Part shown: positions 3,812-43,000 of the stretch, piece after piece
How the letters are laid out: each line of letters begins with the position of its first letter
Numbering within the stretch: position 1 is the first letter of the stretch
Source of the DNA: Vitrella brassicaformis CCMP3155
Taxonomy: Eukaryota > Protista > Chromerida
Assembly: GCA_001179505.1 (NCBI GenBank)
Contig: CDMY01000593.1
Location: 1-46,456 of the forward strand
Direction of reading: 5' to 3'
Length of the DNA stretch: 46,456 bases
Notes under the pieces: model-generated
Told to the model about the DNA's origin: nothing
What the model saw: the letters and a program-made list of their open reading frames with translations, nothing else
The model's database searches: none
Translations under genes and position numbers: made by a program

Positions 3812-5403
3812 ATCTTATCTGCCTATGCGCCACGAGAGCTCGCTGACGAATGAATCAAGGAATGAAGGAGTGGGTGAACGAGTGACAGACAGACAGACAG
3901 ACAAGCGAGAATAACAGACACGTGCGCTCGCTCAGTGCACGCAGTGGACGTCGGCAAGAGGACAAAGAGAGAAAGAGAAGCAACAAGCAGACTCGCTCAA
4001 CAAGACCTGCTCTCTCCCAATCAGACAGACAAACAGGCAGACAGTCAGACACGCACCAGGCTGCTGTGCTGCAAGCCGCCCACCGACTACACTAAAGAAG
4101 GCAAGCAACTGACTGACTGACTGAGCTCCCGGATACAAAAAGAGCACTCAATCACTCACACCCAACTCACAGCCGCACAAGGGAGGCAGAAACCGACACA
4201 ACACACACACAGCTGATCTGACAGCTGATAATTAGATCTGATTTGCCCTTAGGTCCGCCAACACGGGTCTGCCGCTGCGACTGAAAGGCACGAGAGCCTC
4301 CCTCCAAGATGCCTCGCTCCTTCAGGCACAGATCACCCTCCGATAGCCGCGGTGTCCGGCTGATGCTGTTGCTTGGCGCATGGCTGTCTCGGGCGGCGTC
4401 TGGTCTCCACGGCGTCNNNNNNNNNNNNNNNNNNNNNNNNNNNNNNNNNNNNNNNNNNNNNNNNNNNNNNNNNNNNNNNNNNNNNNNNNNNNNNNNNNNN
4501 NNNNNNNNNNNNNNNNNNNNNNNNNNNNNNNNNNNNNNNNNNNNNNNNNNNNNNNNNNNNNNNNNNNNNNNNNNNNNNNNNNNNNNNNNNNNNNNNNNNN
4601 NNNNNNNNNNNNNNNNNNNNNNNNNNNNNNNNNNNNNNNNNNNNNNNNNNNNNNNNNNNNNNNNNNNNNNNNNNNNNNNNNNNNNNNNNNNNNNNNNNNN
4701 NNNNNNNNNNNNNNNNACCAGCAAGCCGAGCAGAGCGATGCCACACACAACAACCGAATGCACCACTCGCGACATACAGGCTTGTCCGCCTATGCGCCAC
4801 GAGAGCTCGCTGACGAATGAATCAATGAATGAATGAATGAAGGGGTGGGTGAGTGAGTGAACGAGTGACAGACAGACAGACAGACAGACAAGCGAGAATA
4901 ACAGACACGTGCGCTCGCTCAGTGCACGCAGTGGACGTCGGCAAGAGGACAAAGAGAGAAAGAGAAGCAACAAGCAGACTCGCTCAACAAGACCTGCTCT
5001 CTCCCAATCAGACAGACAAACAGGCAGACAGTCAGACACGCACCAGGCTGCTGTGCTGCAAGCCGCCCACCGACTACACTAAAGAAGGCAAGCAACTGAC
5101 TGACTGACTGAGCTCCCGGATACAAAAAGAGCACTCAATCACTCACACCCAACTCACAGCCGCACAAGGGAGGCAGAAACCGACACAACACACACACAGC
5201 TGATCTGACAGCTGATAATTAGATCTGATTTGCCCTTAGGTCCGCCAACACGGGTCTGCCGCTGCGACTGAAAGGCACGAGAGCCTCCCTCCAAGATGCC
5301 TCGCTCCTTCAGGCACAGATCACCCTCCGATAGCCGCGGTGTCCGGCTGATGCTGTTGCTTGGCGCATGGCTGTCTCGGGCGGCGTCTGGTCTCCACGGC
5401 GTC
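3753..5403. repeat. Direct duplication (3753-4416 and 4717-5403) flanking a 300-N gap
   Basis: The two copies look identical over about 500 nt. They differ just upstream of the LNR-gene ATG (TCTTATCT vs CAGGCTTGTCC) and in microsatellite unit counts. Confidence 0.95.
4417..4716. other. Assembly gap (300 N)
   Basis: Run of N. Confidence 1.
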
Positions 5404-20743: not shown

Positions 20744-23700
20744 TCATCTGGGTGCCCCCGTCCGCCGGTGGTCATCGTCTTCCACAAAGTTGCGGAACTT
20801 GACGACGTTTGGGTCTTGCCGGCCGATGAAGCAGTAGCCGCAGCTGCGCTGGAGGCAGGCCCAGTACATGCGGCCGCTGCACACACAGAGAGAGAGAGGG
20901 GGGGGGTATGTGTGTGTGTGTGAGGGGGGGGCTCGCTCACCAGATGAAGCATGAGACGAGGCAGCCGATGAAGAGCAAACACACCGCGACTATCAGTCCA
21001 ACTACACACACACAGAGACACACACAGAGGGATGGCTGGCTGGCTGGCTGATGCCGCTCAACCAAGGGCACATGTCTTCACTTGGCTTACACATCCATCC
21101 AGGCATGTCGTTGGATGCGGGCAGCTTCTCATCGGTCTCCTCCATCGCCCACTGCCTCTCGATCGCCGGCACACCGCCAGACAGCGACTTGGTCAGCACT
21201 TCACGACCAGGACCACTCAACACACCTGACAGAGAGGCGTGAGTGACGGCCGTCACACGCTCGTGTGTGTGTAGGAGTGTGTGTGTGGGGGGGGAGAGAG
21301 GGGGGGGGAAGGAGGGTACCTACCTTCATTGAGCAGAGTGACCCGCGCGTTGCCCTTCCCCCCGCTGTAGCTCTGGAAACCCGCAATGCTGCACGCCACA
21401 CACACACAGACACAGTGCACCTGTGCTCCTGTGTCAATCACTGCATCCCACCTACCGACACCCACACACACCTGTTCCATGTGTTCTTGTCTGTGTCCCA
21501 GTGCTGGAGGGACATCGGCGGCGAGGGGGGCTCCTTCGACGGCCAAAACTGATGGATGGATGGAGTGGACACACACACACACAATGGACAGATGCAGGGT
21601 GGATGGATTGATGGTACCTGGACGCACTGCACGGTGTGGTTAGTGTCGTAGTGCACCCCGATCCACCCCTCCCACGCCCGGCACGACCGCCTCCTGCACG
21701 GCGACACCCACGCCTCCATGCCGTTGCCCACAAGGGGGTCACGCCCGTCAAACGCCTGGCAGGCACCGCACACACATTGTGTCTGTGGGTGTTTCTTGAG
21801 TGGCGTGAGAGGCGTGGTTTGTTTATTGCCTTTTTTGCGTTGTCTGACGGCTCCCTCCTTCGTGGCTCGCCGTTGCTGGTGATGTCCACGGTGTTGTCTA
21901 GTGGCATGCCGAGGTCGTGGGGAATCGGCTCGCGGCAGTGCCGATCGGCGAAGAACCTGTAGATCAGACGCGCACACGACACACAGACACATACACACAC
22001 GTGGCTGTGGGTGTGGGGTACTTGATCTCAATGATTCCAAAATGTTGGCTGGTGGGGTGCGTGTTGACCAGCCGCCACAGCCGACTCGTCGGCACCTCAA
22101 GAGCTGCACACACACACACACACACACATCCACAATACACCCACCCATCCTTCGGTGCTTTGCTTGGTCACCTCTTTCGCACAGGTCGCCGGCAAAGTTG
22201 GCCGGGCAGTCACAGTGGGCAAAGTTGACGGCCTCTATACAAGTGCCGTCGTTGAGGCATGGGCCCTCCTCACACTGACCCACCTGACCGCCACTTGAGC
22301 TGGAAAGGGCAGGCGCCAAACCTGGCACTCCTGCACACACACAGGAGATAGACACCCCTTCTGTCTCTCTCTCTCTCTCTGTCTGTGTGTGTGTGTGTGT
22401 GTCTGAGGGCGGAGGGGTGGAGGGGTATGTGTGTCAGCGGACTGACCTTCTCTGGGCGCGTCAGTGCACCTCATGGTAGGGAGTGCGGTGCCGTTGTCCG
22501 TCTTGAGTGAGCCCACGACCGTGGTCGTCCTGCGGATCTCAAAGCGGTCCAGCTTCAGACAGAAGTCGCTGTCGAACCCATCTACACAACACACACACAC
22601 ACACACACACATGTGTGTGTGTGTGTGTGTCCGGCTTCACTGCACTGCACTTTTCACCGTAGCAGAACTGCTTTCTGTCTTTGGTAGGGCTGCCCGCGCC
22701 GTAGGGGATCCCATTGGTCAGCGTCGGGAGGCCATACTGCTCTGCGGTTATGTACTGCACATCACATCCACCCCCCCCCCCCCCCNNNNNNNNNNNNNNN
22801 NNNNNNNNNNNNNNNNNNNNNNNNNNNNNNNNNNNNNNNNNNNNNNNNNNNNNNNNNNNNNNNNNNNNNNNNNNNNNNNNNNNNNNNNNNNNNNNNNNNN
22901 NNNNNNNNNNNNNNNNNNNNNNNNNNNNNNNNNNNNNNNNNNNNNNNNNNNNNNNNNNNNNNNNNNNNNNNNNNNNNNNNNNNNNNNNNNNNNNNNNNNN
23001 NNNNNNNNNNNNNNNNNNNNNNNNNNNNNNNNNNNNNNNNNNNNNNNNNNNNNNNNNNNNNNNNNNNNNNNNNNNNNNNNNNNNNCACACACACACAGAC
23101 ACAGACCCACGTGGATGGATGCACGCAGGCAAAGCGTCACGTGTCAGTATCGTCTGCAGACAGGTCTGTACCAGAGTGGTAGGCATCGGCTGTGGGTGTT
23201 GCTGGTCGGTGCGCGGCGAGCCGACGCGCGTGACGCCCCACCAGATGTGGTAGATGGTCCCGCGGATCAAACGGCTCCAGTGGGGATACCTGCAGGCAGC
23301 CATGGTATCGACACACACGTGCATCTCTCTCTCCCTCTCTCTCTCTGTGTGTGTGTGTGTGTGTGTGGTGGTCAGGCCGTCAATCCATCAGCACCCACCG
23401 GCCCACCCACCCGTTGACGTCGGCGACACGCGCCCACACGCCGTTCCAGATTGCAGGTGAGAGGCCGTCGTACCCTCGCGCAGGCAATCCACTCAGCTCC
23501 AGACCATCGCACGACTCCGATGGCGGTGGCGAAGAAACTGCTGTGTGTCGACACACACACACACACACATGGAGGTGCGGTGGTTTGGTTGATGTATGTG
23601 TCCATGTGCGTGCGCCTGCTCACCTGGTGGTGGTGGTGGTGTTGGTGGGTCTCTCGGCTCTGCTGGTGGAGGAATAGGCTCCCCCCATTTCTCATAGTCT

Positions 23701-25402: not shown

Positions 25403-28197
25403 ATGGCGGCCAGGGCGGCGACAGGCAGTGAGTCAATCGGCAGTCTGCGGGCCATCCGAGTCTGGAACGAGGGCACCGATGACAAGCCGCCTGCCCGCTG
25501 CCACGAGCGATGGGTGGCCAAGCTGGATGGACTCAAGGGCCACGAGAAAGCCGCCATCATCGGCACTCGAGGGGCCACCATCAAGCGGCTGCAGGATGAG
25601 TCCAAGGCAAAGATCTATGTGGCACCGCACCACCAACAGCAACAGCAGCAGCAGAGATACGACGCCGGTCAGCGCGGCAGGGGCCGGGGAGGAGGGCGGG
25701 GGGGCCGCAGCCACCAAACACACCGCGACCAGACGGACGGCTCCGATGTGCTGGTGAGCATACCGACACGAGCGGCGAGATGCATGCTTACTCTGTGCGG
25801 TTTTCCTTCCCCTCTTCGTCTGTCTGTCTATCTACAGGTGCGAGGTCATCTTGCGTGTGTCCTGAGCGGATGCCGTCTTGTCATCGCCTTGCTGCGGCAG
25901 GTCAGCGGCGGCTCGGGTCGTGAGGGCAACTGGACCACGGACACCTACCGGTGTGAGCTCATCGACGAGAGTGCCGGCCAGCAGTTTCCCGGATGGCTGC
26001 AGCAGGGGAGAGACCGAGAGGACAGCGGGGTGCCGTCACTGCTCTTCAAGTCGAGTCGGTCGCGCACACAGGAGGGCGTGGATCGGCCGCTCAACGAGTT
26101 CGGTCTGCTCGTGGCTGCTGTGAAGCGACCACCCAGCTGGGATGAGGACGAGGGCTCCTATGCCCGAGCGGAGGCGGCGCTGGGCGACCTGTCCGGCTCA
26201 CCCTCCTTCTTGTCGTCTTTCGAGCGGCTGGTGGACAGCACCCACCTATACATCATGCACACGAGCGTTGAGCGCATCGGCAGACTGTTCGACCTCCTCC
26301 ACGAGAGCAGCTTCATCCCTCTGCCCACGCAGCCCCTGGCCACCTTCTCCTTCCCACCCATCCCGGCATCTCGCAGCCCGTCGCCCGCTGCCCTCCCCAC
26401 AGCGGAGCTCGTCTCGTCCTACTCATGGGTCACTGGCTCCTGCATGAGGTCGCCTGCCTTCGTCCGGGAGTACCTGAGCGACGCTGGCGCCTACCCGATG
26501 GAACTGGACGGCATCACGTGGCTTGGGCAACAGCAGTGTCCCGACGGCTCGTTTCGCTTGACGCATCAGCTTCTGGACATCCTTGGTGTCAAATCGGTGT
26601 CGTTGGCTTGTGCGCTCGAGAGGGGCAGGAGGGAGGGCGGCCTCGCACTGGGCGATGGCGACCTGCCGAGCAAGGTGGCAACCCTCACCGTCGTTGCTGG
26701 CGTGCGGTTCTGGTGAGCAAAACGAATATGTATCAACATGGGCGGGAAAAGGCCGGCAAGCAGGGAACACACACTCGTCTGTGTGTGCGTACGCCTGTCT
26801 GTTAATGCAGGCGCCACGCAGCGCGGCGGTCCAGCCGGGTCAACGCGAGTGCTCTTGGTGCCGAGGCGCTGAGGACGATTGTCACACGGGCGACCACCTG
26901 GCTGGAGCAGCACTGTGAGGGCGCGAGTGATGCTGTCCATTCCCTGGCGGAGAGTGAGGCGTTTTCCATCTACCGTACGGACAAGACCGTCTTGTTTGAG
27001 CCATTTCTATTCGCTTATACGATGGCCCCATCAGACAAGAGAGCGCCGCAGCTGCAGCCACAGCACTGGGAGATCTTCATCCCGCGCAACACGCTCACCG
27101 ACCTGATGCAGCTGCCCTATGATCGCACCAAGGGCATTGCCTTCACCATCGTCAAGACGGAAAGCGGGCGGCTGTTCGTCACGGCCAGGGTGTCGCCAGA
27201 CAACGACAAAACGCTGCCTTTGACCGACCGGGCCATGCTGTATGAAAGCATGGCCACGGGGTGGCGGGACAGCCCGGCGTGTGAGGGGCGGCTGGTGGTC
27301 AAGCTGACGACATGGCCACAAGGGCCTTCATCTTCTGCTTTGCCAATGGCGGTGTGGACTCTCACCGACATCGACTGTGTGGTGCCCTCGTCAGGGGAAT
27401 CTGAGCTGCAGCGGGAGGCAGGGTGGTGCCCCGACCCTGAGAGCAGCTTGGATGGGACCATTATGTGGCTGACGGGCCACGACGGCATCCCACAGCCGGC
27501 CGCATGCCAGCAGCCCAACGGGTCGGCACTCTTCTGGTCGGCGCCACTGTCAGACCACACGAGTGGTGGTGGTGGTGACGGCCGTCGAGAGCTGTGCCTT
27601 GAGGACACAGTTGAGCTCAAGACGACCTTCGACTTGCCTGGCAGCGAGGGGTTTGAGAATGAGATGCTCATGAGGACGTGGGTGCAGTGTGTTGCCGGCG
27701 GCACCGCACATATCAAGGTGACGCACAAACCAATGCACCGGAAGACAGACAGGTGTGCATGTCTTTTTGACGCTGTGTGTGACGGTCATTCATTTGTTCA
27801 GGTTGCTTTCAAGTCCCGTCCCGACCCTTCGAAGCCGTGGCGCGTGACGGTCGACTCTCCGCCCACATCCCTCACCCCGGCGACCATCGCCCACCCGAGC
27901 AGCACAGTGGGCAGATGGGACGGGGGGTACATCACGTCCACCGTCGGCAACATCCTGTCCTTCATCTGCCAACACGTCACTGAAGCTGGGTGCGTGTATG
28001 AGCTTTGCTTCGACCCGCCGTCCACACAGCTGCGGCTCATCAAGAGGGAGGATGTGGGCGCTGATGGCGATAGGGCCGAGGGGGGGATGGACACGACGAT
28101 AGAGAAGATGCTGCCGGCGTGGCTCGGGCGGTGGGAGAGAGAGGAGGCCAATGGTGGTGGTGGGGATGGGGAGGGGGGAAGAAAGGCAGACGAGTGA
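25403..28197 (+). CDS. KH-domain RNA-binding protein with a probable C-terminal NARG2_C/ICE2-like domain (4 exons)
   Basis: KH GxxG loop AAIIGTRGATIKRLQDESKAKI and RGG-like RGRGRGGGRGGR. Introns at about 25753-25837, 26713-26809 and 27718-27801 give one continuous frame. The NARG2_C resemblance is from motif recall and is less certain than the KH call. Confidence 0.8.
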
Positions 28198-28582
28198 CAT
28201 GGGATGAGATGGTGCGAGGCGATGCCTGATCTGTGCACGTGCCGTGTCGGTGATGACTTTTTTTCGTGGCGTGGCGAGACAGACGCTGTGTGCATCAAGT
28301 ATGTATCATTTATCCGTGAAGTGAATGTCAGCCATGTCATGTGTGCATCACGCCAAACCAGCCACACCTCTCTCTGCCCCTCTAACCGACCAACACACCC
28401 ACACGCCAATACGCTAGCTTGTTCCTCACTCATGTGTATGTACATCAACAGATCGATCAACCAATGAGTACTTACATGCGATCGATAAGCGGGTGGCTGC
28501 CTCTGCCATCCATCACATCACTGGCCCCCCTCTCTGTCATGGACCTCCTTCTTCACCAGGGGCGGGGTGGGCAGGTGAGGCA

Positions 28583-31500
28583 TCATGGGATCGTCGCTGT
28601 CTGCTTATTGGGCTCCTGCTTGATGCTGATGCGGCTGTGTCTCGCCGGCTCCTGCTTGACGGCCGCCGGGGTGGTCTTCGGGGCGTCCTTCACAGCCGAC
28701 CTGAGGCAACAACGGAGCTTGTTTTGCACTGCCTAGTGCATGTGTGTGTGTGAGTGTGTGTGTACTTGATGTCGATCTTGGTCATTCGTTTAAGGCGGTC
28801 GGTGTTGACCCACACCCTCGCGCCATCCTCCATCTCAACTCGGTACCACGGCTGCACACATACCGACCGTACACGGGCGGACAGACAATGCAGCACAGCA
28901 CAGCACAGCCACACAGATTTGCTTGCAATGCGTGGATCTCTCTCCCTTTGTCTGTCTGTCTGTCTCTCTCTCACCTGTCCCTCCCTAATCTCGCAAGTGA
29001 TGATCCGCTTGTACAACACACCGCCCTCCCCCGCACCATCCAAACCACCGCCACCACACCCACCCTTCTCGCCCTTCTCCTCCTTCTCGCCCTTCTTGGC
29101 CTCATCTTTGGGCTCTGTCTTGACGGCAACAGGAACGGCAGCAAGAGCAGCGGCAGCTGCGGCTGCTGCTGCCTTCCGTCTCTTGGTCACCGAGCTGCGC
29201 TGCTGCTGTGGCTGTTCCTGTGGATGTGGCTGTGGCTGGGAGGGTGGCTGCTGCTGGGAGGGTGGCTGCTGCTGTTGCTGCTGCTGCTGGTTGGCTGGGT
29301 GGACGGTGTTGGGTCGGTAGCCGCTCATGAAGGTGTGCAAGGGGAGCCGAGCTGCTGGGAGATACTGGCCCTGGGGGCGGGGCGGGGCGAGAAACGAAAG
29401 AAGGTCCTTGTGTGTGTGTGTGTGTATGGGGAGGCCGTTACCTGTTGGTATGTGGCATACATGTGCATGCATACCTTTGGGGCGCCGCGAGTGGGCAGTT
29501 CCTCGTCATTGTCAACAAAGCGATGCGACAGCAGAAACCTGCTCAGCAGACAATGAGTGTCATCGATCGGTCTGGTGCGTGTGTGTGTGGGGGTGAATGA
29601 GCGGGCGGGGGGCCTGGTCTGGTTCTCACTCATTGATGGGGTCACAGTTGAGCGGCTCGTCTGTCTGCATGGTGCTCTCAGCGAACCGCCGCAGCGCCTC
29701 ACGGTCACCCACGGCATCTTGCGGAGGCGCCACACCACAGCCGCCCTCAATGCAACGCGGAAACTGCACACACCACACACACACACACACACGTGCAGCC
29801 ATCTGGTTGTCTGTTTCTCTCACCCAGATGCGGACGAAGAAGTTGTTGGTAGTGAGTACGTCCTCGACAGTGACGTCCAGGGCCATCTCGCCCACAGCGT
29901 AGGTGAAGACGGCGCCCTTCTTGGCCACACGCGCCAGCCTGTGTGTGGGGCTCTTGGGGTGGTCGGCCGTGGACGGCGTGAGGGTGGTCTTCTTGTCGGG
30001 CAGAGTGATGCTCACGTTGGCCGCGGCCTCGGGGCGCTGACATTTATTCGTTGGTTCGTTGATGGATGACATCACACAGAGAGACAAGGGATGACAGAGA
30101 GGCATGTTTGATCCAGAAGCGGAGCAGAGGGTGGTTTGGGGTGTCAGGCTTACTTGGTATTGGAGGCAGTGGAATATGATGCGATGGAGGTTGAACAGCG
30201 TCACCGATGAACTCACTGACCGAACGACCCCACAACACACCCAGACATCGATTCAATGCCCGTGTTGTGTTGTGTTGTGTTGTGTTGTGTCTCCCTCCCA
30301 CCCTCCCATGGGTCGATCGACTCACTGGCAGCGATGCGTGTGAAAACGTCCCTGCCTTCGTGCCTCCAGACAACCCGCAGCTGCACCAGCTCCACCCTCT
30401 CTCTCCCCCTACCCTTATCCTTATCCTTCTCGCCCTTATCATCCACACCCACATCTCCGTCACGCTCCCGCTCTCGCTTGACGCCCCTCTTCTCTCTCTG
30501 CTCGTTTCTCTCCACTGGTGGTCCGATGCGGTCGCTCGGCTCTGTCTTGACGGTGCCTGGGCAGGGGCGAGGGGAGGGGCGGGGAGGGGGTGGCGGTTGG
30601 GGTGCGTGGGTCTGTGGCTTGAGTCGCGATATGAGGCGCGTCAGGGGGAGGGTGAAGATCTGCAGCGCTGCCGACTCGTTCTGCGATGCCGGCACATTCT
30701 GATTAGGCGGGGCCATGGGAGGAGAGCGAAACAGACAGGCAGACATCTCTGGATGGATGGATGCGTTCGTCATTTGGTCTCTCTTGTTTGTTGTTTGCTG
30801 ACTGACTGACCGGCACTGCTGGGAAGGGCCTGGAGCCTTTCTTTTTGTTCATGCTGAGATTGGCCGAGAAGCAGCCTTTGATGAGCGAACGGTTGACGGC
30901 GTCGATGTTGAAGGGCGAGTGGGGTGATGACTCGGTGGGTGCGGGTGGGTGTGGGGGTGTGGGTGTGGGTGGGGTCCATGCAGCGAGCCTGTCGGCGTCC
31001 TCACACACGGAGGCGGGGGGGGCCTTGCCAGTGCTACCCTCAGAAATGCAACGCGGAAACTAAACAAAAATAATTAACCACAACACCACCCACGCCCATA
31101 TTCGCACACTTGGCGTGGATATGGCTTGTAGGTGTGTGGTCTGTGTGGTGTGTGTGTGTGGTGTTCTGACCCAGACGGTGGACACTTTGATGCCCATCTT
31201 GACTTGCTCCACAGTCACGTCAAAGGCCAGTGCGCCGTGCTCGTAGCTCCCCACCTTGCCCTGCCACCCACCGCCTTTGCCATCGTCATCGCCATCTGCC
31301 TCTCCGTCTTCATCCTCGATGAAGCTGCTCACACGCGGGTTGCCGGAATAGCCGGCCTGGTTGCAGTAGACGGCGTCGGTGTGGCGGTACACAGTGCCGT
31401 CGGGCAGCTGCATACACAGAGGGAGGGAGGGAGGGAGGGAGGGATGGAGGGAGAGGGGTGGGTGGGTGTCTTCCCTCTCTCTCTCTCTGTGTGTGTCTTC

Positions 31501-33874
31501 CTTCCTTGTTCACACATACACACATCCATCCATCCATACCGTCCAGTTGTGTGGCATCATGTTGCTGTGGGGACGCTCTTTGTGCTCCAGGCACAGCGTC
31601 ATGACTCTATGCATATCTGAGACAAAGAGAACAAAGATAGATGGGCAGAGAGTTAACATACTGCCTAGACTACACGACTGCGGTGTGCGGTATTGTTCAT
31701 CGTCCGTCCGTCCTTACTGTACAAGGTGTATTTCGACGTCACCCCCACAACCCTGTGTGACACACAGTGGATGGAAGAGGAACATTACAATGATTGCACA
31801 TGTCTGGTGAGTAAAGGCAATGCCCAACATCAGGTGCGGTGTGCGCATCAGACAACCCACCGGACGATCTTCTCCTCTCCCGGTGCATTCCGGCTCTCGA
31901 ACCGCAGCTGCACAGCGTTGAGCAGCACCAGCCGCTGATGCTGCCTGCCACGACCACCACCACCACCACCAGCAGCAGCCCCCTTGCCGATCCCCTTATT
32001 GCTCTTATTCTCCTCCCTCTTCACACGCTGCTTGGCCTGCGCCTTTTTCTTCGGCTGCTGCTGCTGCCGCTGCACCTCTCGCTTCTGCCGACGCATTGGC
32101 AGTGGGGGGGATGGCGGGATGGGTGCTGGTGGTGGCTCGTGCACGGCCGTGTCGATGTGCTTGAGCTGCTCGGTGAGTGGTTCGCGCAGGGGCGATGTGA
32201 AGAATGAGGGGAGAGGTGTGGAGGCCAGGCTGAGGACCTGCGGCCACAGGTGGGAGGGCAGGGAGGCCTGACGGGCAGCACAGCACACAGACGGGGGGGG
32301 GGCGGATGGATGGATGTCCGATGGAGGGCCACTGCACTGGGAGATGTGTCTGTCTGTGTGTGTGTGTGTGTGTTTACTGGTATGCCGTGCGATATGCCGA
32401 TCTTCCACCGAAACGCACTGCTCAGCAACACTCTGCATTTAAAGGGAAGGAAAGAAAGAACAACTCAATCGTGCGAAAATCGTCCTTCCATGCGCGACAG
32501 ACATGTGGGTCCCGATCTCACTCACCTGTTGACGGCATCGATATCGATTCTGGTGGCGGCGCGGTGTCGTGTGATGTCGTCTATGCTGCCGCACGCACTC
32601 TGGGGCGGTGCCACGCCCTTGGAACCCATACACAGACGAGGCGCCTGCAGACAGAACAAAGAGGCGAGCGATGCCATACACACGCATGTGTAATCATTGC
32701 CCCTCTCCCTCTCTCTCTCTCTCTCTATCACACACACACACACACCCAAATGGAGTCTTCTTGGCGCTTGTGCGTCGCCACTGAGATGATGCGCATCTCG
32801 CACTCCACTGCACGCCACCACACACACCACACCACACCACACCCGTCTGTTGGTGTGTCCTCTGTGCGCTGTGCGTGAGTCCTTCCTTACACATGTTGGT
32901 GTAGTATTTGATGCGCAGGATGGAGGGATCTATGGTGTCACCACACAGGCTGAGCAGCGTCAGCCGGCTGTCCTGGTCGGTCGTCATCGACACGTCACTC
33001 ATCACCTGCACACAGCACAACACAGCACAACACAATACAATACACACACATCTTAGATGTGCTTGTGAAGACAAGGTGACAATATATATTTTATTTCGTA
33101 CGTCTGGTGGTCCGCTGCCATATGGTCCTGATGGGATTTCTGGTGAGTCGTCATTCTTGACTGCAAACAGGTGGATGGCACGGTCAGACTCCTCCTGCAC
33201 ACACCCACACACCGACACACCGAAACAGACAGACAGACAGACGGATGGATGAATGGATGGATGGATGGATGCCTAAACGCCTCACTGACTGACGCCCTCA
33301 CTCACTGACCTTATAGCCGAGGACACACAGAATGCACCTGAGCACAGGCACACAAAGATGCCATCCATGCCATCCATCCATATGCCATCGTCAGTCACAT
33401 CCCCCGCCCCCCCTCTTCAGCTCAGCTTGCTTACCGATGGAAGTCGAAGAGAGTGATGGCTGCCGGGACGACGACGCGCCGCACCACCTCGCCCTCCACA
33501 CACATGTCACTGCTCAGCCTCAACTCCAACACATCATCCTCACGCAGATGCACACTCGTCCCCCCAACACCACCACCACCATCACCACCAGAAGCGCGGT
33601 TGCAACCCTCCTCCACCATATGGTCATGATTCTCACGGTAGCGACTGCCGGTGGATGCGCTCCGGCCGCTGTTGAATGCGTTGAAGGGGGTGGGGATGAC
33701 GTCTGTGGGGAGGTTGGCCTGTTCGAAGAGCTTCTGAAGCTCCCCTCTGGCTATCCTCCGCTCCAGATCTGCGAGGGTGAAGCCGGGGATCCTGCTGTCC
33801 GCAAACAGGTCATCGAGGTGCACATCGCTGGCGGGCGCGGCGGCCGTCGTGGCGATTTCGCCTCTGTGAGCCAT
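28583..33874 (-). CDS. Protein with three tandem pRiA4b ORF3-like (MM3350-like, PF07929) domains and a C-terminal chromo-like domain
   Basis: Many GT-AG exons join in frame, including micro-exons 33337-33310 (28 nt) and 31752-31718 (35 nt). R1 VVRRVVVPAAITLFDFHRCILCVLGY..AIHLF..W|APRLCMGSKGVAPPQ..IDIDAVNR; R2 IVRVVGVTSKYTLYNMHRVM..FDVTVEQV..W|FPRCISEGSTGKAPPAS..FNIDAVNRSL; R3 VTLFNLHRIIFHCLQY..FTYAVGEMALDVTVEDV..W|FPRCIEGGCGVAPPQDAVGD. Confidence 0.8.
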
Positions 33875-33946
33875 GGAGTGGGTGCGGCGCGGCTGTAAGG
33901 TCGTTTACGGATGTAAACTTTCCGGTACGGGACTGCGCAGCGCACC
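33875..33946. promoter_or_regulatory. 72-bp divergent intergenic spacer with a GTTTAC-GGAT-GTAAAC inverted repeat (33903-33918)
   Basis: Lies between the minus-strand ATG at 33874 and the plus-strand ATG at 33947. The inverted repeat is seen directly; a regulatory role is inferred. Confidence 0.4.
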
Positions 33947-35031
33947 ATGGTGGTTCGGGTGCCCTTGTTTGCCCTCAGCATCTTGGTATGGCTGTCGTGC
34001 GGCGTTGCAAGGCAGGGTCCTCCCATCAGTCAGGATGGCGAGTGCGCTGGCTTGAGCTTTGCTGACGTCGGCCCTGCGGTGCTTAAGAAGGATGAGGTCG
34101 TCATGGGCATCGACATCGACAGATACACCGTGAGAAGACGACGTGACACGACACACCTCTAGGCGCGGCGGGGGAACCTGCTATACGTACTCGGGGTTGT
34201 CTGGAGTTGACAGCTGTCTGACTGTCTGTCTGTCCGTCTGTCTGGTATCCGTGTCCGTGTGCAGGGCCTGTGGTACCAGATAGCTGATTCCATTCTGCCC
34301 CGCTGCACCTTTGGTGTGGGTTGCTCGTGCACGGGCACACTCTACGAGGCGGCTCTCGACGCCGACACCGACAGGCCCTTCATCGAGGTCAACAACATAT
34401 GCCGGAGGGAAATCCCGGTACCACCGTCAGAAGGCCGCGCAGACCCAATCGAGGATCCGGACAGTAAGGGACTGATTGAGGGGCGGCTGTATGTGCAGTT
34501 CGCGCCAGACAGGGACGAGCTAACCTTCCCTCCCACTGGCGTGACCATCTTGGATCAGCCCGAGTTCTTCTTTTCGCGGGTGGGCAACTACTGGATCATT
34601 TACCTTGAGCCGGCCGAGGGGGAAACACTGGAGGAGGGAAAGGAGCCCTATGAGATCGCCGTGGTAGGCCATTGCCCTGACGCACCTATTGTGGTCCAGA
34701 ATGGATAAACGCAGCGCTGGCTGTGTGCTGTGTGTAGATTGGGAGTCCCGACAACACGACCCTGTTCATTCTCTCGCGCAAGCCAGAGGTGTCTGACGAA
34801 GACTATGAGCGCATCCTGCAGGCCATTGTCGACTTGGGGTACGACCTCGATACCGTCCAGCTGAAGAAGACGGAGCAGGGGGGAGACTGCCCGCCGCTAG
34901 AAGACCTGCTCGCCGAGATCGGGGTCGAGGTGCCCGAAGACACGACTCCTGATAAGACCACTTCGACGACAGAAAAGCCCACTGAGGCGCCGACCAAGAA
35001 GCCGACCAAGAAGCCGTGTGCTAGTAAATAG
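33947..35031 (+). CDS. Secreted lipocalin, Blc/ApoD-like, with a Thr/Pro/Lys-rich tail (3 exons)
   Basis: Signal peptide MVVRVPLFALSILVWLSCGVA; SCR1 IDIDRYT|GLWYQIA; SCR2 GNYWII; SCR3 IAV|IGSPDNTTLFILSRKPEVSDEDYERIL...LGYD. Confidence 0.92.
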
Positions 35032-36395: not shown

Positions 36396-37319
36396 GGATG
36401 CAACACCACACGTGGCCATGTGTATGTTTCAGCAGTGCAGCCTCCCTCCCTCCCTCCGTCCCTCCCTCCCACGCACATGGGAGAGCATGAACCCCAGTGA
36501 GTCTCTGGTGGTGAGAGCTTTTCGCTTGTGCATCCAGATGTCGTACGGCAGCATATTCAGACCAGCTGTGAAACCTGTTAGTTAACATACACACGACACG
36601 CATGCATCCGTGACCTGACTGACCATATATTCACTTACTGTGTCTGTCCTACCACCCACCCACCCACACACTTACCAGCCATGACTCCAACCGACACCCC
36701 CCAGACCTTCCCCCAGTCTAACCGCCACCTGCACACACAACACACGGGACGCAACACACATCACGCCACAGACAGGTCATAGATGACATGTACTGTGGCG
36801 ATGCGTGCCTCGTGGGACTCTGATCTGGCAGATCGTCCCTGTGGTTGTCCACATGGCCGTGTGGGTGGGGCATCCACTTGTCCCTATCACCTGCACACAC
36901 ACACACACAACATCTCAGCAAGATACGGATGAAGGATCGTACACACGCACCGATTGGAAAGTGGGAGTGTCCCTCTTTCCCCGTCAGGGCCGTCCGCAGC
37001 ACCGGCGATGCCGCACCGCCGTCGGACATGGGGTTGGCGCCATTGGCCATGGTGGTCATGTCGACAGTGGTGGCGCTTCGCTGGTGCTCCTCGATCAGCG
37101 GATCTACCAGCTGCTGCTGCTGCTGCCGCTGTTGCTGCGCTGACTGGGGCATTGCCGGCATCGGCATTGGGTGGTCGAACGTCTCGAGTCGCTTCATTCT
37201 GTTTCTCTCGAGTGCGGGCTCAACGACCAGAGTGAACAGGAAGGACAGCAGCAGAAGCGCCAGGCCGACATCACTCAGCCACGGAACCCTTATCGTCTCC
37301 TTTGGAGCACCCAGGAAAC

Positions 37320-37352
<33 letters not shown>

Positions 37353-37891
37353 CGCACACGTTGAATGTCCAAATGCGCCATTGGTCGATCGCTGACCGAC
37401 CGACTCTGCCGACGAGGAATCCGATGAGCAGGTTGACAGCGTGGTAGAGCGTGAACCCCAGCCCCAGTCCAAGGAACCTGACGGTGGGCAGCACCAGGTA
37501 GTTGCTGACACCCCAGAAGGCACCGCCCAGCAGCCCCGGCAGCAGAATCGGCAGCGGGAAACCTGTGAATGAATGAATGAATGGATCTGCGTTTGTTTGC
37601 ATCTTAGCTCAGCTGAGGGTTTTCTCACTCACTTAGGCACAGGTTGATGATGAATCCTGTGATGAGGATGCCGCCTGCCATGTGGTATTGGAACAGGCTG
37701 CCGTCGTGGATCTCGTACTTCTTCACCTGCAGACAGACAGGCGCAAAGGAAGGAGCAGACAGACAACCACACACACACACATGAATGAATGATCTCGGTG
37801 CTCGTCCATGGAGGGCGCGGCTTACTGGGACGTATTGGATGCCAAACATGACGCTTGCAAGCAGCCCGAGCAGCAAACCAACACCGTCCAT
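35754..37891 (-). CDS. TMEM144-like (CEO/DMT superfamily) multi-pass transporter; N-terminus may extend to ~38100
   Basis: MFGIQYVPV|KKYEIHDGSLFQYHM, LLGGAFWGVSNYLVLPTVRFLGLGLGFTLY, WLAGVIWAVGN and AFFVFKEIHGK match the TMEM144 pattern. Confidence 0.88.
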
Positions 37892-42700: not shown

Positions 42701-43000
42701 NNNNNNNNNNNNNNNNNNNNNNNNNNNNNNNNNNNNNNNNNNNNNNNNNNNNNNNNNNNNNNNNNNNNNNNNNNNNNNNNNNNNNNNNNNNNNNNNNNNN
42801 NNNNNNNNNNNNNNNNNNNNNNNNNNNNNNNNNNNNNNNNNNNNNNNNNNNNNNNNNNNNNNNNNNNNNNNNNNNNNNNNNNNNNNNNNNNNNNNNNNNN
42901 NNNNNNNNNNNNNNNNNNNNNNNNNNNNNNNNNNNNNNNNNNNNNNNNNNNNNNNNNNNNNNNNNNNNNNNNNNNNNNNNNNNNNNNNNNNNNNNNNNNN
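42701..43000. other. Assembly gap (300 N)
   Basis: Run of N. Confidence 1.

Follow-up and report, generated by a model that had tools for sequence, protein, structure and literature searches.

A 20-exon gene of Vitrella brassicaformis encodes three tandem units that are probable relatives of the bacterial PF07929 family

The PF07929 (pRiA4b ORF-3, MM3350) family is large and common on resistance-carrying plasmids and transposons, and to our knowledge nothing is known of its action. Here we describe a gene from the protist Vitrella brassicaformis CCMP3155, which is located at 28583-33874 on the minus strand of contig CDMY01000593.1 (GCA_001179505.1). The window, namely the whole stretch of DNA that was analyzed, is 46,456 nt in length. 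The gene encodes three tandem units, and these units have the same motif order as MM3350 of Methanosarcina mazei (PDB 2I1S) across the whole domain of ~170 amino acids (aa). In contrast to PF07929 and 2I1S, the V. brassicaformis protein is eukaryotic, is encoded by an intron-rich gene, contains three copies in one protein and has its hallmark acidic and aromatic residues replaced.

The passenger genes of plasmids and transposons belong to the same family: they encode single-domain proteins of about 190 aa and lie inside mobile DNA. For example, ISAzba1-group transposons carry PF07929 passenger genes (PMC3942029). Likewise, the PF07929 gene WP_012477564.1 of an E. coli plasmid adjoins ISKpn19 and a recombinase. 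In contrast, the V. brassicaformis locus possesses neither a transposase nor terminal repeats, has single-copy depth and is placed among housekeeping genes. Several bacterial PF07929 domains are fused to LexA_DNA_bind, Fe_dep_repress, SEC-C and several domains of unknown function (DUFs). In these proteins also, the domain is one module of a larger protein and is sometimes beside a DNA-binding domain. However, the bacterial multidomain proteins have one copy each and bacterial partners, whereas the V. brassicaformis protein has three copies, low-complexity linkers and no recognised partner domain. An earlier note on this DNA had tied PF07929 to plasmids, insertion sequence elements and the MM3350 structure, and these ties were borne out.

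Taken as a whole, the locus is likely to be one expressed nuclear gene for a protein of 1120 aa, in which three tandem, strongly diverged PF07929-related units may form a multivalent nuclear binding scaffold. The gene and its repeats are well supported, and the relationship to PF07929 is probable. The locus is a moderately interesting candidate for the eukaryotic reuse of a domain that has elsewhere been seen nearly always on the plasmids and transposons of bacteria. In the literature searched, there was no mention of a PF07929 domain in a eukaryote.

To build the gene model, minus-strand stop-to-stop frames between 34200 and 28300 were taken and the coding-looking pieces, which lie in changing frames, were joined by hand at GT..AG sites. 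The model has 20 exons and a single open frame, with its ATG at 33874, its TGA ending at 28583 and no internal stop, and all introns are GT-AG.

33874..28583, minus strand: whole coding region, 20 exons, 19 introns of 60-132 nt, coding sequence of 3363 nt, 1120 aa
33874-33435, 33337-33310, 33194-33102, 33005-32891, 32807-32746, 32644-32526, 32432-32378, minus strand: exons 1-7
32267-31861, 31752-31718, 31616-31540, 31407-31171, 31059-30811, 30698-30326, 30215-30154, minus strand: exons 8-14
30036-29824, 29763-29630, 29538-29475, 29370-28975, 28851-28766, 28700-28583, minus strand: exons 15-20
33541..32429, minus strand: unit 1, aa 112-287, exons 1-7; BLASTP E 2e-5 to unit 2 and 8e-8 to unit 3
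31928..30883, minus strand: unit 2, aa 418-615, exons 8-12, with two inserts, one acidic and one Pro-rich; BLASTP E 2e-15 to unit 3
30401..29532, minus strand: unit 3, aa 739-902, exons 13-17; RNA confirms each of the four introns inside it

The three units are about 165-200 aa in size and align pairwise along their whole length with identities of 23-28% (BLASTP E values as listed). Thus, the three tandem units described in the earlier note were confirmed. The introns are also shared. A phase-0 intron is located directly before (F/A)PR-C in all three units (between W and FPRC in the example of WFPRC), and a further phase-0 intron closes each unit. Units 1 and 3 have two more introns in common: a phase-0 intron after GYK/QYQ and a phase-2 intron in the codon after (V/I)N (the R of VN-R and the E of IN-E). 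Because intron positions are shared between units, the duplicated copy already held introns, and therefore the triplication took place inside a eukaryote. No repeat between the units was found at the DNA level, and thus the copies are old. The triplication is therefore real and old, as the earlier note had supposed. A six-frame scan of the whole window with a hidden Markov model (HMM) of the units found no further copy.

In a tree calculated on an hhalign-merged alignment, the three units formed one clade (0.993), within which units 2 and 3 were sisters (0.928). The unit clade was on a very long branch adjoining the bacterial clade of the PPEDCGG type. Because of this branch length, the placement of the units among bacteria is unreliable. 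The tree fits one ancestral copy followed by two duplications. In our reading, internal duplication occurred after the ancestral copy gained introns: unit 1 split first, followed by units 2 and 3.

The relationship of the units to PF07929 was analyzed by comparison of profiles. The reference was an E. coli member, which scores against Pfam PF07929 at 8e-32 and against PDB 2I1S at E 2.4e-12. The bacterial set comprised relatives of this member and 80 loci taken from reference genomes, with identities as low as 34%. Two alignments were used: one of 32 diverse bacterial sequences and an 11-sequence subset with the classical PPEDCGG motif. When the three-unit alignment was compared with the 32-sequence alignment by hhalign, the probability was 91.3% and P was 9.6e-7 over 150 columns. 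These columns have the first strand at one end and the terminal f-x-r-x-x-i-N motif at the other. The comparison with the PPEDCGG subset gave 85% and P 6e-6. The real score was 46.4, and the controls were far lower (200 column shuffles, at most 22.3; reversed alignment, 13.4).

The spliced protein was then the one target of hmmsearch with filters off, in which it scored 7.8 bits with the 32-sequence HMM (E 1.4e-4) and 9.9 bits with the 11-sequence HMM (E 2.9e-5). The maximum among 3000 window-shuffled versions of the protein was 5.7 bits, so that none reached the real scores. The local matches, all in the right register, fell within unit 3 (each of its halves) and within the N-terminal half of unit 1, where aa 130-169 formed the highest-scoring single HMM match to PF07929. 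In the reverse search, an HMM of the three units scored bacterial members up to 13.8 bits, and the best of 845 shuffles scored 3.1.

Identity of the units to bacterial members is 18-20%. The order of the hallmark motifs (WRR, LH..IQ..GW, HLH.F, Y.YDFGD.W.H.I.vE, P.C..G and PPEDcGG) is kept. All units conserve the R after the first strand, TL..(F/M/L)HR, Y...(V/I).(V/I)E, PR.C..G and APP. In contrast, WRR, GW, DFGD.W.H and the ED and GG of PPEDcGG are lost or altered.

Several observations weigh against our overall reading of the locus, and some further searches gave no support for it. The nine unspliced exon open reading frames (ORFs) gave no Pfam match at E up to 1, and the scores of the proxy HMMs, below 10 bits, are far under the curated PF07929 cut-off of 26.6 bits. 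WRR is changed to VRR, VRV or FTR, YxYDFGDxWxH to YYTNMLE, YEHGALA or YAVGEMA, and PPEDcGG to APPQSACG and similar sequences. Structure prediction reached a pLDDT (predicted local distance difference test) of 32.7, too low to be of use; the input was a single sequence, unit 3 with two retained introns and with the first strand missing. In a protein atlas, unit 3 with retained introns scored no higher than 0.63 (BAH and Agenet clusters); these neighbors are unrelated and too weak to be useful. When the C-terminal half of unit 3 was searched by phmmer against 1.84 billion representative proteins, neither a true relative nor the protein itself was recovered. Two phmmer matches, to a Cna_B adhesin and an ankyrin protein, were rejected as spurious and repeat-driven. 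Accordingly, the protein and its close kin are absent from this representative collection. A metagenome scan with the conserved PRC-APP block matched 91 patterns and revealed no relative. NCBIfam and PADLOC detected nothing, and this was also the case for the bacterial members. An alignment by MAFFT of the intron-retaining unit 3 with bacterial members placed the central strand out of register, owing to the retained intron, and was not used; a model made from it would be circular.

Judged by the family's own score criterion, then, the units are not members of PF07929. From the collinear motifs and the profile comparison, we propose that they are likely to be remote relatives, and they may share the MM3350 fold. 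The kinship claimed in the earlier note therefore stands in the motif order and in the profile-profile P value of 9.6e-7, but not in a Pfam-type score. It is improbable, in our opinion, that the repeated unit has no kinship with PF07929 and is a domain specific to its lineage, with a shared motif order that arose by chance or convergence. The lack of a Pfam match and the low HMM scores mentioned above would fit such a domain. Moreover, PF07929 is the only family that was put through the profile-profile comparison, and the first hhalign run, with a narrow enterobacterial PF07929 alignment, was too weak (only P 0.05) and was replaced by the diverse set. However, with that diverse alignment the match extends across the whole domain and is far above the 200 shuffles, the reverse HMM search parts real members from shuffles, and the three local HMM matches are all in the right register.

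The earlier note had also considered that the PPED-GG motif drifted differently in each copy, as a sign of sub-functionalisation. The sequences APPQSACG, APPASVCE and APPQDAVG are present as it described. However, the gammaproteobacterial plasmid subfamily of PF07929 as a whole does not have PPEDcGG either. Because the motif is missing in a bacterial subfamily, its loss by itself tells little about a possible sub-functionalisation of the units.

The linkers between the units are disordered and rich in Pro, Gln, Lys and Arg. A basic cluster is present at aa 363-379, and a stretch resembling a nuclear localization signal (NLS) was read from the sequence of linker 1. The linkers also contain seven psi-K-x-E motifs, whereas 1.2 are expected, and none of 5000 shuffles reached seven. 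Four of the seven have the form [VI]K[TQ]EP, which is strongly over-represented; these are in the disordered linkers and tail.

32093..31980, minus strand: NLS-like basic stretch of linker 1, RRQKREVQRQQQQPKKK and following
about 30550, 29125, 28660 and 28625 (aa 689, 1004, 1096 and 1108): [VI]K[TQ]EP copies, extended SUMO-type consensus
29028..28697, minus strand: short beta-rich C-terminal segment, aa 1036-1083, split by the intron 28974-28852

SUMO is attached at the consensus psi-K-x-E, and most often to nuclear proteins. The basic stretch of linker 1 may serve nuclear import. The basic linkers and the SUMO-type motifs are the sole basis on which a nuclear role, and the eukaryotic nuclear parts assumed in the earlier note, are suggested. 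For the C-terminal segment, the query was a spliced peptide of 55 residues. In Pfam, it had a sub-threshold match to DUF7141 (E 5.4e-4, 20.1 bits, cut-off 27) and weak matches to the bacterial SH3_3 and SH3_4; in PDB, no sequence match was found. The idea that this segment is a chromo or Tudor barrel was rejected, since Pfam gave no Chromo or Tudor match and PDB gave none.

Our best guess for the role, which we put forward tentatively, is that the protein acts in the nucleus as a non-catalytic scaffold for multivalent binding. Each MM3350-like unit would be a binding surface for protein or nucleic acid, and the units would be joined by the disordered linkers with their basic NLS-like cluster and seven SUMO-type motifs. 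This role would be comparable to that of the bacterial PF07929 fusions with winged-helix DNA-binding domains. The gene has stayed intact through triplication and long divergence, and comparison of the units therefore marks the central V-E strand, the TL..HR helix and PR-C-G-APP as indispensable positions, and the acidic ED-GG and the DFGD-W-H block as dispensable ones.

Another possibility is that the units keep a biochemical activity of the bacterial proteins, as an enzyme or a ligand sensor, and are not passive binding modules. PRC-x-G, APP, the His-Arg after TL and the V-E of the central strand are indeed kept in all three units, and after long divergence the frames are still intact, as would be expected under selection. 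However, none of the units retains the DFGD-W-H block, or the ED and GG of PPEDcGG, in unchanged form, PPEDcGG is likewise missing from a bacterial subfamily, and no activity is known for any PF07929 member. Therefore, we regard retained activity as quite unlikely, and a binding scaffold is preferred.

The structure and expression of the gene were examined with read data over 28300-34200 (5901 letters), to which two RNA-type runs and two DNA-like runs were aligned. The two RNA-type runs contained 14-20% of the words of the locus, and the DNA-like runs up to 97%. RNA contigs from both RNA-type runs were spliced, whereas the DNA-like runs were contiguous across introns. Six introns were matched exactly by RNA contigs: 33101-33006, 30325-30216, 30153-30037, 29823-29764, 29629-29539 and 28765-28701. 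At the intron 30325-30216, 62 letters between two aligned pieces of one RNA contig correspond to exon 14. At the intron 28765-28701, the aligner made a 4-nt shift with one mismatch, as the GT-AG junction predicts. The intron 29629-29539 contains the in-frame TGA that follows CDPINE and is spliced out in both RNA runs; thus the reading frame extends for another 220 residues. One RNA contig runs to 32267 and continues with nine letters identical to the end of exon 7. Therefore, the acceptor of exon 8 is 32267 and not 32237, which adds 10 aa and gives the protein of 1120 aa. The locus is a real, expressed, intron-rich protist gene.

The gene includes two micro-exons:

33337-33310, minus strand: 28-nt micro-exon, encodes CILCVLGYK, the helix after TLxxxHR of unit 1; aligns with IIFHCLQYQ of unit 3
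31752-31718, minus strand: 35-nt micro-exon, encodes VVGVTSKYTLY of unit 2; aligns with the TLF motif of units 1 and 3

Omission of either micro-exon breaks the frame, and without the 35-nt one a frameshift and a stop result. A 248-nt RNA contig (depth 6.7) has 78 letters past exon 3, and the two bins that follow have RNA depths of 0.92 and 1.67, as expected for the 28-nt micro-exon and 49-50 nt of exon 1. These values imply that two further introns, which flank the 28-nt micro-exon, are supported by RNA contigs. The 35-nt micro-exon and the 62-nt exon 5 are without RNA cover and are based on the frame and on alignment with the other units. The donor of exon 5 was placed after W on the model of units 2 and 3, in which an intron of the same phase occupies this column. 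Thus, the earlier note was right about both micro-exons, and about one spliced gene at 28583-33874. These micro-exons are a clean example of exons that standard gene callers tend to miss, and this may explain why no such protein turned up in a collection of 15 billion sequences.

A point against the single-gene model is that 10 of the 19 junctions lack RNA cover and no RNA contig spans the whole gene. Nevertheless, two or three separate genes, or internal promoters, in place of one 1120-aa product are very improbable: the RNA contigs are short, of low depth and extend over four exons at most, but each linker shares an exon with the first strand of the next unit (exons 8 and 13), the RNA data bear out the exon 7/8 junction as well as the chain of exons 13-14-15, the TGA after unit 3 is removed in both RNA runs and the frame is open through all 20 exons.

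In both RNA runs, contig matches end at the intronic positions 29570 and 28907 and are followed by unlike sequence. These breaks adjoin (GT)n and (GTCT)n repeats. They are probably assembler joins at low-complexity DNA and not alternative splicing.

The nearest 100 atlas clusters of a cyanobacterial PF07929 member are all bacterial. Because PF07929 is overwhelmingly bacterial, a bacterial origin of the units by horizontal acquisition is plausible. A wider scenario is that a passenger domain of bacterial mobile elements was taken up long ago by a protist lineage and expanded into nuclear regulators, of which the triple-domain multivalent binder would be one; we think this unlikely as it stands. 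If it is true, the domain would be a nucleic-acid or chromatin-binding module, and its function would first become workable in this eukaryotic setting.

The earlier note had called the locus a candidate domesticated mobile-element module. In its present state, the locus is not a mobile element. No long inverted or direct repeats and no terminal repeats were found there, the DNA depth over the gene equals that of the flanks, as for a single copy, and the neighbors are ordinary eukaryotic genes.

26992-28197, plus strand: RAI1-like neighbor (PD-(D/E)XK decapping nuclease), Pfam E 1.9e-7
25403-26716, plus strand: KH_1 neighbor, Pfam E 1.6e-5
36721-37602, minus strand: TMEM144-like neighbor, Pfam E 2e-8

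On the other side of the ATG, a well-expressed plus-strand gene begins at a distance of ~60 nt (33935-34130, and onward from about 34264). Its first aligned exon ends at 34130, and RNA resumes in an ORF starting at 34259. This gene and the minus-strand gene are a head-to-head pair, which probably has a common promoter region.

Two features of the assembly were observed elsewhere in the window. Four runs of exactly 300 N are present at 2309-2608, 4417-4716, 22786-23085 and 42701-43000, and none of them touches the gene. The low-GC bins in the composition profile of the window are caused by these runs. On the plus strand, the ORF pieces at 3878-4117 and 4853-5104, ~985 nt apart, have identical HMM scores. 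This suggests that a direct duplication flanks the run of 300 N at 4417-4716, perhaps as an artefact of the assembly.

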